A DNA stretch of 63,961 nucleotides, filler included, from Reticulomyxa filosa (taxonomy: Eukaryota; Protista; Foraminifera): the NCBI GenBank assembly GCA_000512085.1. It is 17 parts of 17 records of this genome, joined end to end, with 100 filler letters (N's around TTAATTAATTAA, not from the genome) between each part and the next. Parts side by side here need not be neighbours in the genome. Positions count along the whole stretch, not along the records: positions 2,287 to 8,062 come from ASPP01006306.1; 16 more parts are not named here. One strand, 5' to 3'. Positions 2,287 to 8,062 of the stretch are shown here, one piece after another. The position numbers and the translations under genes are program-made. The notes under the pieces are model-generated. The model saw only the letters and a program-made list of their open reading frames with translations, did not search any database and was not told the DNA's origin. Numbering within the stretch: position 1 is the first letter of the stretch; the number at the start of each line of letters is the position of its first letter.

Positions 2287-2363
2287 ACAATAATAACAAT
2301 AATAACAATAATAACAATAATAATAACAATCACGACAACAAAGAGAATGCTAACAGTGCGGTA

Positions 2364-5300
2364 ATGTTCAACGCAAGCTCCATGCATGATCGATATCAGT
2401 TGAAATCAGCACCCAAACCACGTACGGGGAGACCTCGCGCTCGACCAGGTCCGAGCATGCGGGCCAAGCCTCCGCCTCCTGTAATCCCCAGCGGAAGCGT
2501 CGGAGCAAAAGGGAAGAACTCGCGAGGCATTGCCGGATTGATGGAATATATATCGCGACGCGAGGGAGTGGGTGGCGATCCTTCGGTGATGGCATTGTTG
2601 GAGCGTATCAACGATACGTTCAACGAACACGTTCCCGACGTTCAAAAAATGCTCGACGATCGCAGCGAAGACATCCAACGCAAAATGTTGCGCACAGCTG
2701 TGGTGAAACGACGAGCCGGGAAAAACGACACTCAACCAAATACCAACTCCAATCAAACGACAATTCAGCCTCATCCTCATGAGAATATCAACATTCGAAG
2801 GGGTACTGTGAAGTCATTGCGCGAACGCTTTGATCATAAGGCCCAAGAGAAGCCCGCAACATTCCGACGCACTCGCAAGAACACCACGACGACACTGAGC
2901 ATTCCAGACGGCAATATTCGTCATCGTCGTCGCGTCAGTGGAGGAATAGATATTCAGTCCTTGAAGCAGGGACACTTTTCGAGACAAGGGTCTTTAGGCA
3001 GTGATGTAACATCCCCGGCAATGGCCGCGTTGGGTGGTCCGTCGGATATTGCCAATTCCAGTCAATTGAGATTGCAATTGCAACATCGCGAGTCGAGTCA
3101 TTCGCGTGATTCCTCGAGTTATGAATATTCACAAACACTCATCACAACCACGGAAGGAGAGGCAGATCCCTTGGATCAATTGCGCAAGATACTCCAAAAA
3201 GAGCCCAACGCAAGGACCGACGAAGATGTGGACGTGATGGTCGATTATTTTGACAATTATCGAATCATGAGTGAGGACATTGATATATACTCTGGAAAGT
3301 CTACATTTCGGGCATTCATTCAAGAAACTCGATATCGCAAATATCAACCAAACAAACAGATCTTCGAGCAAGGCGAATTGGGAAACGAGTTTTATTTCAT
3401 TTTGACCGGCAAGGTCAGCGTGCTGGTCAATGAGGATGTCAATGACACAGATAACAAGGATGGTGCTTCCAACAATCCCGATCCCAATCAACAACATGAA
3501 CAACATAACGACAATCAAGATGACGACGACAATGAACGGCTGCCCAAAGACGAACAAAATCCCCGTTTGATGTCACCGCCATCGGCAACTGTCACAATTC
3601 ATGAAAACGACGACAATCCCGACGACGACGACGACGCGAATGAAAACGATCCAAAGAAATTGAATCCAAAAGGCGGTCATGGCAAAGGCAAAGAGAGTGG
3701 TCGATATGTGCAGCCTCGAATTAGCGCAGAAGAGTTTGTGGCACGAGTAGAAGAAGAAGAAAAGCAGAATCAGCCAAAACAACCAACGTTTGGAATATGG
3801 AACGCGACGAGTTCAAGCTCTTTGCCCAAACCACCAAAGCGAAAAGAAGTGGCCGTATTAACTTCACACGATTTGTTTGGAGAATTGGCTGTGGATGGAA
3901 AGGACAGTCGTCGAGCAGCAACGTGTGCGTGTCAAACGATTGTGGAAGTCGCATATTGGACGAGAGAGACGTACGATCGATATATTCGACCTTTGAAAGA
4001 CAACAAAAGAAAGGCATTGCAAGTGCTATTCGATAAGAATGATAATATGCTGGGCGAAGAAGAGCTAACGCAAAAGGCAGCTCTATTCTTGGACGATGTA
4101 ATGCAAAAGCGACCATTGAAAATGCATCGCACGAGCAAATGGCCACAAATGGTCCATCATTTGACTAACAGCACTTGGTTTACATTCAGTATGTACTTAA
4201 CTTCCATGTTGTTGCTTGGTCTGATCCTTTTGGAGCCGCCTTGTTTTGGCGATTATCGCGAGGGTGGCATCTACAAATCCAGAATTGGTCCTCTGTTGGC
4301 TGTGGAATGGCTCTTCTTTTTCATATTTCTAATGGAATGTCTGCTGCGAGTATATTCGTTCGGGTCCAAATGGTTTTTGGACACACCCGTCCACAAAGGT
4401 CGCATTGTGGCATTAACCATCTTTGGCTTGGATCTGCTCATTGCCACGAGCATGGGCGGGAGATCATTTCGATTTAGTCGAGTCTTCCGTCCCATGTTTT
4501 TGTTTATTTTCTCAAGATCCTTGCGACAAGCCTATTTTGTGGCCGTTCGCTGCTTGCCGGCGACCATAGAAATATTGCTGTTGACATTCTTATCATGGCT
4601 GTCTTTGCGCGTGCGGGCATTCACATGTTCAAATTCTCCAAAGACTTGTATGTGCCCTATAATTTTACCAACGGTCTGTCTCCCTACACCGACCTAAAGG
4701 GGAATTGCGATCAAATACAGTGTTTTCAGGACAAATCCAAATGTTGTAACGTCGATCCCACCGTCTTCCAATCCTTTGATAGTTTTGCTCGAGGAATGGC
4801 CTCGCTATACGTACTTATGACCACTGAAAACTATCCCGATATCTTTTGGCCGACTTGGATGAATGGTCATTTCTATTGGACCTACTTTTTGGTGTTCCTT
4901 TTGTTGGTTACCTTCTTTTTAATGAATCTCTTTAGCGCTGCCATGTATGATGCATTCTATCACATCCTATCCAATGTCGTATGGGTCGAAGAGGAGCGCA
5001 GCGAGTCGGAGGCCTTGCAGGCGGCCTGGACTTGTCTGGATCGCAATTTGTCGGGCAAAATATCCTTGAATAAATTCAAGCAGTTGATGAAATACTTAAA
5101 GCCAAATTACACCGACGTCCAAAATAATGTCTTGTTTAGTTTGTTGGGAGCTGCCCATAAAGATGATGAGATTGACGAAGAGCAGTTTAGCATCAATATT
5201 GTCAGTGTGATGTATTTAAATATTACAAAGGTCAAACCTCGTGCACAATCGCGCAAAGAATTATTAAAGAAATGCCCTTGCTGCTCCAAACAATTGTTAT

Positions 5301-6877
5301 TTGATATTATTCGAGCATTTGAAAGTCAATACTACAATGCGCTGAAATGTCTACTGATTGTGCTCGATTGTTTGGTATTATTAATCTATCATGACGCCTA
5401 TCAAGCGTGTTGGGTCATCGACACTGTCATGGCGTTCTTATTTGCCGTGTTAACGATATGCGAAATCGTATTTGTACATAGTTTGACGTGGCGCTTGTTC
5501 TGGCCGGAATCTTTGGAGGAAGGGCTGATCAACAAAGTCGAATTTGTGGTGGGCGTGGTGCATTTGGGAAGCGCATGCATTGGTTTATACGATGACAAAG
5601 CGTGGATTACGGTATTTCGATTTGTCGCTTTGGCGAGGGCCTCCTTTGTTGCCAAGTTTTTGTTTCAAAATATTCGCGGATTGCGATCGAGTATGAGCCA
5701 TGTGTTGACGAGAACATTTCTGCGAATGCTTCCGGTATTTTTTGGATTAGTCTTTGCTTTTTCCGTGGGTTTAATGTATGTATTCACTGTCGTTGGCATG
5801 GAATTATTCAACGATTCAAATAAATATGGAAAAAATCGTTGTGATGAGTCTGGAGCATTGAATCATGATCCCACAGCCACATTTTGTGATGCTCAAATGA
5901 CAATCATTACACTGTTTCATATCTTTTGCAGTAACAATTGGAATGTCGATATGTTCTCTGCAGTCAAGCATTTCAATAATAATATGGCCGTCAGCATTTA
6001 TTTCATTTTGTTCCATTTCAGTGGACCAATCTTTATGCTCAACATGTTACTGGCCGTGTTCTTTGAAATGTACTTTGAGATATCTCAGACGTTGGACAGC
6101 GATCTGACTGCAGCTTTCGTTGACGAATTTGACAATATTACAGACAAATCCAAACCAAAGGACGAACGCGGTGACACACAAAAGCAGGACGAAGATAAGG
6201 AGGGCCATAGTGACAACAACGCTGAAGGCGATCAAAAACATACTACCATTGAACTAGCAAACAACAGCAAAGGAAACTCCACCGACGCAAATGTAGATAA
6301 CAATGGAGACGTCGCATTAAAAGATATCGCCAAACAACTTCGCACGCATTTGGAGCTACGAAGCTTCGTCTTATCCGACGGTCAAATATTCGAAAAGACC
6401 TTCACTGGCACACAAGCTGTCGATTATTTGGTGTCCAATAAATTGGCACCGGACAAAGAAGAGGCTGTTGATACGCTCACGCAATTGATAAGCCAAGAAA
6501 TGTGTGCACAAAGGGTCGATCCAGGAGCACCCAACGAATTCGAAAACATACCAAACTCTCATTACAAATGGATTGACGACGTTGACGAAGAAAGTGCCAA
6601 TATTCATATTGGCTTGAAACAGTCTTATGGAGGTTATCAGCATATCATGAAACGCACCCATACCATTGAAAAAATGCAGAGTGAAATGACCAAAGCTCCA
6701 GGAGGACTGAAACGAGCACGAACTGTAGGAAATTTGTTAGTGGATAACAAAAAAACCCCTGTTCCAAATACTACTGGAGATAAGGATAATAACGCTAATG
6801 CTTTGGATACCGAAAAAGCCAATGACTCCAATGAAGAAACAGTTCACCTTTGTTTAGTACAATTGCTTTTCCTTTGA
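2364..6877 (+). CDS. Two-pore channel (TPC)-like cation channel with N-terminal cyclic-nucleotide-binding domain, EF-hand linker and C-terminal DEP domain; one frameshift at about 4590 joins ORFs 2364-4697 and 4595-6877
   Basis: CNBD: 'IFEQGELGNEFYFILTGKVSV' ... 'FGELAVDGKDSRRAATC'. Repeat I: S4 'RSFRFSRVFRP', pore 'LYVLMTTENYPDIFWP'. EF-hand 'DRNLSGKISLNKF'. Repeat II pore 'TLFHIFCSNNWNVDM'. DEP 'FEKTFTGTQAVDYLV...EEAVDTLTQLI'. The frame is open back to the contig edge, so the true start may be missing. Confidence 0.85.
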
Positions 6878-7689
6878 ACAAAAGAATTTGTGTGTGTAAC
6901 AGACACGATTGAAAGGTGGAAACTTATATCCAGGACCTGGAACAGGTGTGCGTGGAAGTGTTTCCAAACCAAAAGATAGCGTGTAATATAGACAAGACGG
7001 ATCAAAACCAAGGTCCAAAAAAAAGACAATTTTTTTTCGTGTTTTGACTTCTGATGTACACTTTTTTTTACCGGCGCATTCTCAAAAAAAGGGACAAATG
7101 CCACCTTAATGTTTATTCAATTATTTGATAATAAAACGCTATAAACCAACTCTTAATCTTTAAGCACAAATGCTTTGCAACATGTTGAACGTATCCGCCT
7201 TGTTTCATTTATTTTTTTCTCTTTTGTGTGAATGGTCAGTTTGTGTTGGCTTCTTTTTTTCTTTCTTTTGTTCAATCATTTTCCCAAAATCATGTTGTTG
7301 AAGAGAAATTTTTTTAGATGAACTCATTCATTCTCTTTTGCTTACTGTTGTCCGTTTCACCACAATGTATGATAGCACAATTCACTTTTTTGTTTCGATA
7401 ATTTTTTATATTAAAAGACGATTACATCATTTAATTCAATACAATTTGTCACTGTTGCTTTTAGTTTTTAAATGGCAGTAGTGACAATTCAATACATTAA
7501 TAATAACTTTGCAAAAAAAGTGTATTTTGAAGTAGCCGAAAACAGAAACAACTAGACTGCATCTTGCAATATCTAGAAGAAATTTTAAGAATCTTTTTTT
7601 TTGCTAATTATATATGATGATGAAGGATGTATTATTTAATTGGAATTTCAAGATTATATATGTTCCAAAATTGTGAAAACGTGCAAATA

Positions 7690-8062
7690 TTGTTACAATT
7701 ACAAAACCCGATAAAGATACAGTGTATGCAAGAATTACAGAATACTTTTACTGTTATCTGGAGTTGGAAAATTATTGGAAAAGATTAAGATTAATGTGAT
7801 ATTTAAATGAAAATAAGCTGTAGACACTCATTGGAGGAGATTGGAATGCTAATCATCCTGCATGGTTGGATCATAACATCGATGATGTGATTGAATGTAT
7901 TCTTGATTTCATTGTACATATTATCAATACATTGCCATTTGACTGCACGTTCATGAAAGATAATGCGACATCAAGCATTGATATCACATTATGTTCATCG
8001 TCTATTCTTCCATTAATTAGTAATTGGAGAACGGATGATGTTGAATTGGATGTACACTCAGA
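7690..8062 (+). mobile_element. Degenerate APE (EEP-fold) endonuclease of a non-LTR retrotransposon ORF2, cut by the contig end
   Basis: From about 7824 it reads 'TLIGGDWNANHPAW...CTF...SSIDITL...NW...VHS(D)', matching the GDFN, ID and SDH motifs of LINE endonucleases. A broken 'PD....QE'-like motif lies near 7706-7735. Confidence 0.75.

Follow-up and report, generated by a model that had tools for sequence, protein, structure and literature searches.

The gene and its features

The window analysed here is a 63,961-nucleotide stretch of joined Reticulomyxa filosa DNA, in which a contig of 5776 bp is the source of the gene described below. GenBank already annotates this gene as the hypothetical protein RFI_08106 (ETO29020.1). 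Its coding content consists of two long open reading frames, ORF1 (2364-4697, 777 aa) and ORF2 (4595-6877, 760 aa), encoding in this order an N-terminal tail, a cyclic-nucleotide-binding domain (CNBD) with a 135-residue insert, a linker helix, 6TM repeat I, an EF-hand pair, 6TM repeat II and a DEP domain. A sequence-only reading had proposed that CNBD, repeat I, EF-hand linker, repeat II and DEP stand in one reading unit, and this is borne out by Pfam and HMM matches and by the same order in other foraminifera. The features are as follows:

2289-2363, plus strand: upstream open frame, poly-Asn; translation is open from the first ATG back to the contig edge
2364-3164, plus strand: basic, low-complexity N-terminal cytosolic region, with patches kept in Nonionella, e.g., HRRRVS and SRDS (alignment)
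3165-4082, plus strand: CNBD with N-terminal helices, beta-roll and B/C helices (Pfam PF00027, PDB matches, family CNBD HMM, AF2 of orthologue)
3435-3839, plus strand: 135-residue insert within the CNBD's beta4-beta5 loop, with many Asp, Asn, Pro and Glu residues (family alignment)
3876-3923, plus strand: phosphate-binding cassette FGELAVDGKDSRRAAT (read from the sequence; family alignment)
4059-4145, plus strand: conserved helical linker between CNBD and S1, EELTQKAALFLDDVMQKRPLKMHRTSKWP (family conservation KA..F.DDA.HGR.LK.HR; helix in the AF2 model)
4176-4592, plus strand: 6TM repeat I, S1 to mid-S5, frame 0 (Pfam Ion_trans positions 6-141, hydropathy)
4587-4594, plus strand: frame break, net -1 nt, within S5 of repeat I (family HMM contiguous over both frames)
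4595-4942, plus strand: repeat I continued in frame 2, with the rest of S5, pore loop I and S6 (Pfam Ion_trans positions 142-236, AtTPC1 alignment)
4949-5188, plus strand: EF-hand pair in the I-II linker (Pfam EF-hand_8, AtTPC1 alignment, AF2)
5330-6076, plus strand: 6TM repeat II (second Pfam Ion_trans stretch, hydropathy, AtTPC1 alignment)
6311-6607, plus strand: C-terminal DEP domain (Pfam, PDB profile search, AF2 and Foldseek)
6608-6877, plus strand: C-terminal tail and stop codon, the latter at 6875-6877 (ORF list)

An AAT tandem repeat occupies positions 2287-2330, and the Nonionella orthologue aligns with about 115 extra residues at its N-terminus; the true N-terminus of the Reticulomyxa filosa protein may be cut off by the contig edge. 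At the other end, the GenBank model (P0008) has its last residues spliced from about 6853 to about 6991 instead of ending at 6875-6877. The contig also carries a retroelement fragment, and Rfam and tandem-repeat scans of the contig piece gave nothing relevant. ORF1 and ORF2 were searched separately; for the tree only, the two pieces were joined with an X at the break. The GenBank model formed one row of alignment A5. A word search gave no matches to the CNBD and repeat I part of ORF1, and a large representative-sequence search was used instead to find its relatives.

The frame break in repeat I

A family HMM from which the window sequence was left out matches frame 0 as far as its position 152 (nt 4586) and resumes in frame 2 at position 154 (nt 4589), which therefore places a net loss of one nucleotide within 4587-4594, just where a 1-nt shift at about 4590 had been suspected. 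At the break, only 2 nt remain where relatives have exactly one residue, and an intron at this place was rejected for that reason. The 68-nt GT-AG intron of the GenBank model (4502-4569) was rejected as well, since splicing it out would cost the protein S4-S5/S5 residues which are conserved and fit the family HMM in frame 0; its GC content of 0.50 is coding-like, compared with 0.306 in the flank. Programmed frameshifting was likewise discarded, there being no slippery or stop-codon context and the orthologues being encoded in a single frame. Most likely, the single-base break is a mistake in the draft assembly or, failing that, a lesion that the R. filosa copy acquired very recently. The CNBD and S1-S5 of repeat I share one uninterrupted ORF, and the fusion is therefore independent of the frameshift, as had been argued beforehand.

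The channel core

The two Ion_trans repeats, one of which is split by the frame break, comprise 12 hydrophobic or S4 segments in total. Repeat I as a whole extends over 4176-4942 in both frames. Its S4 (4458-4493) displays four Arg, one at every third position (RxxRxxRxxR), and its S4-S5 linker contains Arg717, Arg719 and Arg722 (S-R-S-L-R-Q); in the family alignment, R, R and R of repeat I are invariant together with a Glu in S2 and an Asp in S3. The S4 of repeat II (5612-5659) has few charges (R, R, K). The pore loop filters read T-T-E-N in repeat I (4820-4831) and S-N-N-W in repeat II (5927-5941). Between the repeats, the EF-hand pair reaches 19.9 bits with EF-hand_8, under the cut-off of 28; it aligns to the EF-hands of AtTPC1, and in the AF2-modelled orthologue the pair comprises four helices. 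Canonical 12-residue Ca2+ loops were not found in the R. filosa pair, loop 1 ending in Lys and loop 2 (AAHKDDEIDEEQ) having no Asp at positions 1 and 3; according to the family alignment, loop 2 is canonical in most relatives. The R. filosa copy has probably kept the EF-hand fold, but its Ca2+ binding is doubtful.

Searched with phmmer against solved channels, ORF2 matched AtTPC1 first (9e-17), in a single alignment (aa 60-495) running over pore I, the EF-hands and repeat II, followed by Cav3.3 (6e-10) and hTPC2 (2e-9). The PDB profile search gave higher summed scores for four-repeat Cav channels and fails to separate TPCs from Cav channels, because four-repeat channels sum more repeats; per repeat pair, TPCs scored 200-221 bits and Cav3.2 III+IV 166 bits. 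For the assignment, weight was therefore given to the scores per pair of repeats, to the search with a single sequence and to structure. For the latter, the Nonionella orthologue was modelled rather than the broken window protein (AF2, pLDDT 78.7). Foldseek ranked TPCs at 1-18 (1.6e-18 to 1e-9; target-normalised TM 0.62-0.76) with Cav/Nav channels appearing only from 5e-9, and the structure-atlas matches of the model are TPC clusters. Both pore loops carry the filter Asn, T-T-E-N-Y-P and C-S-N-N-W aligning to T-T-S-N-N-P and V-M-G-N-W of AtTPC1, and the family consensus is LLTTENxP and TTxNW. A channel-core tree, calculated without named TPC1-3, grouped the CNBD-bearing clade with other two-repeat channels and apart from the Cav3 and Cch1 halves (SH-aLRT 99). 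By its sequence matches and the predicted structure of its orthologue, the channel is placed with the TPCs, and to that extent the original assignment as a two-pore channel is supported.

The cyclic-nucleotide-binding domain and its linker

In ORF1, Pfam cNMP_binding (PF00027) scored 41.4 bits against a cut-off of 27.5, the match being split in two by the insert; the orthologues scored 49-64 bits, unsplit. PDB matches were the CNBDs of Plasmodium PKA-R and Epac2, the family CNBD HMM matched at aa 299-365 and 493-573, and the AF2 model of the orthologue displays a canonical beta-roll. The insert is absent from Nonionella, Elphidium and Amorphochlora, present in the R. filosa paralogues ETO32248.1 and RFI_20040 and, judged by this distribution, specific to the Reticulomyxa lineage. 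An unspliced intron was rejected as its origin, as it is in frame, open and of coding-like GC content (0.464 versus 0.306 in non-coding flank), with equivalent acidic inserts in the two paralogues.

The cassette, F-G-E-L-A...R-R-A-A-T, has kept the Gly-Glu and Arg-Ala-Ala-Thr ligand residues. Its counterparts read KRSAT in Nonionella, Elphidium and P0158, IRTAT in Amorphochlora, and RTAT or RSAT in environmental members; Ser/Thr-type cassettes (RSAT/RTAT) are the type of PKG and CNG channels. RAAT had been taken to favour cAMP. While this motif is indeed present in the R. filosa copy, the preference does not hold for the family, because the relatives carry RSAT or RTAT. In some environmental members (P0029, P0033, and P0055), the cassettes are degenerate, and ligand binding is therefore not universal across the family. 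The helical linker between CNBD and S1 is the best-conserved cytosolic segment of the family and a candidate coupling element.

The DEP domain

Pfam DEP (PF00610) scored 26 bits on ORF2, under its curated cut-off of 32.7, and 22-28 bits on the orthologues. In the PDB profile search, the top matches of this region were the DEP domains of pleckstrin-2 and DEPTOR. An AF2 model of positions 6242-6700 showed the order H-E-E-H-H-E-E, as expected of a DEP fold (helix, beta-hairpin arm, a pair of helices and two short strands), with a core pLDDT of 80-88, and the Foldseek ranks 1-43 of this model were DEP domains throughout. At the level of the predicted structure, the DEP fold is confirmed.

Relatives and alternative explanations

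The same full layout is found on single uninterrupted ORFs of Nonionella (P0006, 1639 aa), Elphidium (P0009, 1838 aa) and an environmental assembly (P0158, 1556 aa). The chlorarachniophyte Amorphochlora (GAB5367910.1) and several environmental assemblies have a CNBD and a two-repeat channel without a C-terminal DEP. In the channel-core tree, every member with a CNBD falls into a single clade (SH-aLRT 100), within which the DEP-bearing foraminiferal members are a subclade (SH-aLRT 100). The environmental relative P0024 reveals DEP-DEP-CNBD ahead of the channel, which is the Epac order. As we found no published description of the CNBD-TPC-DEP architecture in the literature, this layout has apparently never been described before.

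That the fusion is an artefact, be it a chimeric assembly or a CNBD gene and a neighbouring channel gene mistaken for a single gene, is extremely improbable. Draft contigs carry this risk in general, and the Bolivina transcript was assembled as two fragments (P0007 and P0001), but the R. filosa CNBD lies with S1-S5 in one uninterrupted ORF, the order recurs within one ORF each in Nonionella, Elphidium, Amorphochlora and a number of independent metagenome contigs, and the best conservation among cytosolic segments falls on the very linker between CNBD and S1. A more serious alternative, though still an unlikely one, is that the base loss is genuine and the R. filosa locus a recently inactivated pseudogene giving no full-length channel, in a family that is itself real. 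The position of the break outside any long homopolymer would fit this, as would at least two paralogues in R. filosa, an EF-hand loop 2 that is degenerate in this R. filosa copy only and the retroelement fragment on the same contig. Against it, about 1537 codons are without another stop or frameshift, the family-invariant residues are all intact, the GC content is of coding type all along the gene and the source is a short draft contig.

The other alternative concerns function. The domain could be a CNBD by descent which no longer senses a ligand, like the KCNH homology domain, and would then serve only as a structural or regulatory module, with voltage, Ca2+ or lipids gating the channel. In favour of this, ligand is not bound by the CNBDs of KCNH channels and of some dinoflagellate tandem channels (PMC7576140), and the 135-residue insert in the beta4-beta5 loop and the degenerate cassettes of the three environmental members point the same way. 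However, this loop lies on the surface and distant from the cassette, the Pfam scores exceed the cut-off, and the Gly-Glu and Arg-x-Ala-Thr contacts are kept in the R. filosa copy, the other foraminifera and Amorphochlora; we consider a loss of ligand sensing improbable.

Proposed mechanism and significance

With a probability of about 0.6, we favour the explanation that a single R. filosa gene encodes a member of a Rhizaria-wide TPC-type subfamily, in which an N-terminal CNBD would tune the channel and, in the foraminiferal members, a DEP domain would anchor it. The protein would assemble as a TPC-like dimer, and voltage would be sensed by repeat I, which has a charged S4 (RxxRxxRxxR) and keeps counter-charges to it in S2 and S3. 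On binding cAMP or cGMP, the N-terminal CNBD would displace the conserved linker helix and thereby shift the opening of a putatively Ca2+-permeable pore, the filter of which has Glu/Asn in repeat I and Asn/Asn in repeat II. Such modulation would be HCN-like in manner, but exerted from the N-terminal side. The DEP domain would most likely tether the C-terminal end to a membrane surface with acidic lipids or to a partner protein. Direct gating by cyclic nucleotides is plausible as a hypothesis; a point against it is that we know of no characterised route by which an N-terminal CNBD is coupled to a channel gate.

A broader proposal, to which we give slightly less than even odds, is that Rhizaria possess a distinct class of TPCs on which cAMP or cGMP acts directly, opening or tuning them via the N-terminal CNBD. 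This class would link cyclic nucleotides to cation or Ca2+ flux and would have arisen independently of CNG/HCN channels, with a coupling geometry that is new in working through S1/VSD-I versus the S6 C-linker, and DEP domains would have been acquired on two occasions, at the N-terminal end in one lineage and at the C-terminal end in foraminifera. For characterised TPCs, the controls are voltage, Ca2+, NAADP-binding proteins and PI(3,5)P2. If the proposal is true, a TPC-type pore under the control of cyclic nucleotides would add a new gating mode to those of the TPCs and represent a second, independent union of a CNBD with a voltage-gated-like channel; because the CNBD sits before S1, its mechanical route would differ from that of the CNG/HCN C-linker. 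This would be of interest for channel biophysics and for the engineering of cAMP- or cGMP-gated cation channels. Foraminifera, whose reticulopodia are highly dynamic, rank among the major calcifiers of the sea, and to our knowledge almost nothing is known about cyclic nucleotide-Ca2+ signalling in Rhizaria, for which a family present in foraminifera and one chlorarachniophyte offers a molecular handle. The intact orthologues of Nonionella, Elphidium and Amorphochlora open the gating question to direct test.

Comparison with known systems

The R. filosa channel shares with AtTPC1 and animal TPC1-3 the two 6TM repeats per chain and the filter Asn in both pore loops, and with AtTPC1 also the EF-hand pair within the I-II linker, the loops of which, unlike those of AtTPC1, are degenerate in the R. 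filosa copy. In contrast to AtTPC1 and animal TPC1-3, it has a CNBD in front of repeat I, attached by a conserved linker, and ends in a DEP domain. It further differs from TPCs in the Glu preceding the filter Asn of repeat I (T-T-E-N versus T-S-N or T-A-N) and in having its strongly charged S4 in repeat I, not repeat II.

Like CNG, HCN and KCNH channels and the bacterial MloK1 and SthK, it carries a CNBD with the same type of cassette covalently on a member of the voltage-gated cation channel superfamily. Those channels, however, assemble as tetramers from subunits of one 6TM unit each, have a K-channel-type pore and bear the CNBD after S6 via the C-linker, whereas the R. filosa channel has a TPC/Cav-like pore, a two-repeat subunit and the CNBD before S1. 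Tandem protist channels likewise combine two 6TM repeats with CNBDs, but consist of duplicated HCN/CNG-like units (6TM-CNBD twice) with GYG-type filters (PMC7576140), while in the R. filosa family a single CNBD precedes a TPC-type core; none of the tandem 6TM-CNBD channels were found in foraminifera (PMC7576140).

The joint presence of DEP and CNBD is reminiscent of Epac1/2 (RapGEF3/4), and the N-terminal part of the R. filosa CNBD matches CNB-B of Epac2 (3.5e-5), although the effector is an ion channel here and not a Rap exchange factor, and the foraminiferal DEP is located at the far C-terminus. In this position it resembles that of LYCHOS/GPR155 and other membrane proteins with a C-terminal DEP, which are found among the structural matches of the DEP model and are also polytopic with a cytosolic DEP at their end, their membrane domains being unrelated.

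Locus and gene model

The piece of Reticulomyxa filosa DNA at window positions 2287-8062 (5776 bases) carries one channel gene in two overlapping open reading frames. The minus-strand ORFs of this piece are short and overlap the channel gene, and an Rfam scan of the piece gave no match. A search of representative proteins returned as top match the hypothetical protein RFI_08106 (ETO29020.1; UniProt X6NRW1), 98% identical over the matched part; the gene is thus annotated, but unnamed.

Features of the channel locus (window positions)
2364-4697, plus strand: ORF1, 777 aa
4595-6877, plus strand: ORF2, 760 aa
3435-3839: acidic insert of 135 residues in the beta4-beta5 loop of the cyclic-nucleotide-binding domain (CNBD)
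4502-4569: intron 1 of ETO29020.1, 68 nt, GT-AG, bridging the frame break in that model
about 6853-6991: intron 2 of ETO29020.1, at the 3' end, altering the last residues

ETO29020.1 begins at a methionine (MRAKPPPP) downstream of the ORF1 start. The frame of ORF1 is open 5' of 2364 as far as the contig edge, via a poly-Asn run, so that the N-terminus of the channel protein may be incomplete. At this edge (2287-2330), an AAT/ACAATAATA tandem repeat forms the poly-Asn codons in the frame of the channel gene. The 3' flank is AT-rich, with a GC content of 0.31. At 7866-8062, an ORF cut off by the 3' contig edge showed a weak match, below the cut-off, to Exo_endo_phos_2 (E 7e-4), the endonuclease of endonuclease-reverse-transcriptase elements, and is probably, judging by this match, a fragment of a non-LTR retrotransposon adjoining the channel gene.

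The two ORFs are separated by a frame break in S5 of repeat I. A family HMM built from five relatives, with the window sequence left out, fits frame 0 as far as HMM position 152, where the match ends at nt 4586, and picks up again in frame 2 with position 154, at nt 4589. In the relatives, exactly one residue separates the equivalents of ...EILLLTFL and MAVFARAG..., at a place where the window has only two bases; on this sequence evidence, one base has on balance been lost between 4587 and 4594, in agreement with the 1-nt shift near 4590 of the sequence-only reading. An intron at this place was rejected, as the GenBank intron at 4502-4569 would cut out the S4-S5 linker and half of S5, the residues lost match the family HMM in frame 0, and its GC content is 0.50 versus 0.31 in true non-coding DNA. 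It is present only to bridge the frameshift.

Domain content and channel type

ORF1 and ORF2 were searched separately, no joined read-through being used in any search or fold prediction. In ORF1, Pfam revealed a cNMP_binding match above the cut-off, divided into two parts, along with positions 6-141 of the Ion_trans profile; in ORF2, Ion_trans resumes at position 142, followed by a second Ion_trans repeat, with weak EF-hand matches and a DEP match of 26 bits, below the cut-off of 32.7. By hydropathy, ORF1 likewise covers S1-S3, S4 and one half of S5, and ORF2 the remaining S5 and S6 of repeat I plus S1-S6 of repeat II. The S4 of repeat I carries four Arg, one at every third position, three of which are invariant in the family of CNBD-bearing two-repeat channels, as are one Glu of S2 and one Asp of S3; the S4 of repeat II has few charges. 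The EF-hand pair is probably kept as a fold. In the R. filosa copy, Lys closes loop 1, and the first two Asp are missing from loop 2, which is canonical in most relatives; Ca2+ sensing by this copy is therefore doubtful.

The channel had been proposed to be a two-pore channel (TPC), and comparisons of both sequence and predicted structure support this. Compared with PDB sequences via phmmer, ORF2 matched Arabidopsis TPC1 best (9e-17), in a single alignment that begins at pore I and takes in S6, the EF-hand linker and the whole of repeat II, followed by Cav3.3 (6e-10) and human TPC2 (2e-9). The family profile covered TPC2 in one stretch across both repeats and scored TPCs at 200-221 bits, compared with 166 bits for the combined repeats III and IV of Cav3.2; the higher totals of four-repeat channels are due solely to their larger number of repeats. 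For an AlphaFold model of the Nonionella orthologue (residues 440-1470, 25-row alignment, pLDDT 78.7), the first 18 Foldseek matches were TPCs without exception (1.6e-18 to 1e-9), with Cav/Nav channels from 5e-9. The ESM Atlas returned TPC clusters and no large cluster joining CNBD and Ion_trans. The pore loops T-T-E-N-Y-P and C-S-N-N-W align to T-T-S-N-N-P and V-M-G-N-W of Arabidopsis TPC1, so that the TPC-type Asn is present in both; a Glu just before the first filter Asn is kept in most family members.

The C-terminal DEP assignment is based on the sub-threshold Pfam match together with profile and fold evidence. A profile search of the PDB with this region ranked the DEP domains of pleckstrin-2 (1.5e-4) and DEPTOR first, above weak non-DEP matches (E >= 0.29). 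Its AF2 model has a confident core of DEP topology, for which the first 43 Foldseek matches are DEP domains throughout, with Epac2, Dishevelled, RGS7, P-Rex1 and LYCHOS among them.

Cyclic-nucleotide-binding domain

The N-terminal helices and first strands of the CNBD match Epac2 CNB-B and the half with the phosphate-binding cassette matches Plasmodium PKA-R. In the cassette, F-G-E-L-A-V-D-G-K-D-S-R-R-A-A-T, the Gly-Glu and Arg-Ala-Thr contacts are intact. The residue following the cassette Arg, by the PKA-versus-PKG rule a guide to cAMP versus cGMP, is Ala in the R. filosa copy; the remaining foraminifera have Ser at this place, and Amorphochlora and most of the environmental proteins have Thr or Ser. 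The family would therefore lean to cGMP, and only the R. filosa copy to cAMP or to no preference; the suggestion that 'RAAT' favours cAMP was guessed from one residue and does not hold for the family as a whole. The 135-residue insert is present in R. filosa paralogues and absent from other genera. Three paralogues (the window copy, P0010 and P0013) have a long Asp/Asn/Glu-rich insert at the same loop, which is thus older than their duplications. The segment between CNBD and S1, KAA.F.DDA.HGR.LK.HR..W, is the best-conserved cytosolic stretch and helical in the model, and hence a likely coupling element.

Relatives and phylogeny

The order CNBD, repeat I, EF-hands, repeat II and DEP, read for R. 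filosa across the break, is found on uninterrupted single proteins of three relatives, confirming the proposed fusion.

Relatives with DEP domains
Nonionella stella (P0006), 1639 aa: complete CNBD-to-DEP order
Elphidium margaritaceum (P0009, MMETSP1385), 1838 aa: complete CNBD-to-DEP order
P0158 (ENA assembly), 1556 aa: complete CNBD-to-DEP order
P0024 (environmental; Logan ERR14822400, L001 1171-7164): DEP-DEP-CNBD and two-repeat channel

Bolivina contributed two fragments of a CNBD-channel-DEP protein. The EukProt sequences of Bolivina argentea (P0001/P0007) and N. stella P0006 form one 90%-identity cluster, near-identical over hundreds of residues, which in two genera may reflect cross-contamination of transcriptome data sets. 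Besides the window copy, R. filosa itself has no fewer than two other paralogues, ETO32248.1 and RFI_20040, both partial. The combination of CNBD, two repeats and EF-hands without a C-terminal DEP is found in the chlorarachniophyte Amorphochlora amoebiformis (GAB5367910.1, 1510 aa) and in seven environmental proteins (P0018, P0022, P0055, P0033, P0029, P0030 and P0020). In P0024, two bona fide DEP domains (78.8 bits) lie N-terminal to the CNBD.

A maximum-likelihood tree (quick search) was calculated from channel cores alone, with 28 rows, without named TPC1-3 reference sequences and with the two R. filosa pieces joined by X at the frame break. All CNBD-bearing channels form one clade (SH-aLRT 100), which fits a single fusion event; within it, the foraminiferal DEP-bearing channels form a subclade (SH-aLRT 100) and P0024 groups with the Amorphochlora protein. 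Two-repeat channels stand apart from Cav3 and Cch1 half-channels (SH-aLRT 99). A separate case is the oomycete protein P0159 (Saprolegnia diclina SDRG_01746, 1429 aa), a channel that has four repeats as well as EF-hands and whose halves are mutual closest relatives (SH-aLRT 100) nested among two-repeat TPC-like channels and not Cav/Cch1 halves; this four-domain channel seems to have arisen independently, by duplication of a TPC in tandem.

Discussion

We propose that the channel would assemble as a dimer like that of TPCs, with VSD-I as its voltage sensor. In this model, cyclic-nucleotide binding by the N-terminal CNBD would move the conserved linker helix and bias the opening of a cation pore, probably permeable to Ca2+, and the DEP domain would anchor the C-terminus at acidic lipids or at a partner.

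That the CNBD-channel fusion is a chimera of assembly or annotation is highly improbable, given the single proteins of the relatives and the genes of P0018 and P0024, each traced to a contig as one uninterrupted ORF. The frame break could point to a recently dead copy; apart from it, about 1537 codons read without interruption and no family-invariant residue is missing, so that the break is either a draft-assembly error or a very recent mutation, and we regard a dead locus as unlikely. Similarly small is the chance that the CNBD, split in its Pfam match and interrupted by the acidic insert, is a ligand-blind CNBD homology domain, its cassette contacts being kept.

Full-text literature searches turned up no account of a TPC that carries a CNBD or DEP domain, an earlier mention being possible. 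DEP-DEP-CNBD, as in P0024, is an order like that of Epac. The closest published case is the tandem 6TM-CNBD channel of dinoflagellates and oomycetes (PMC7576140), a member of the HCN/CNG lineage that was not found in foraminifera in that work; the R. filosa channel is of the TPC type by sequence and predicted structure.
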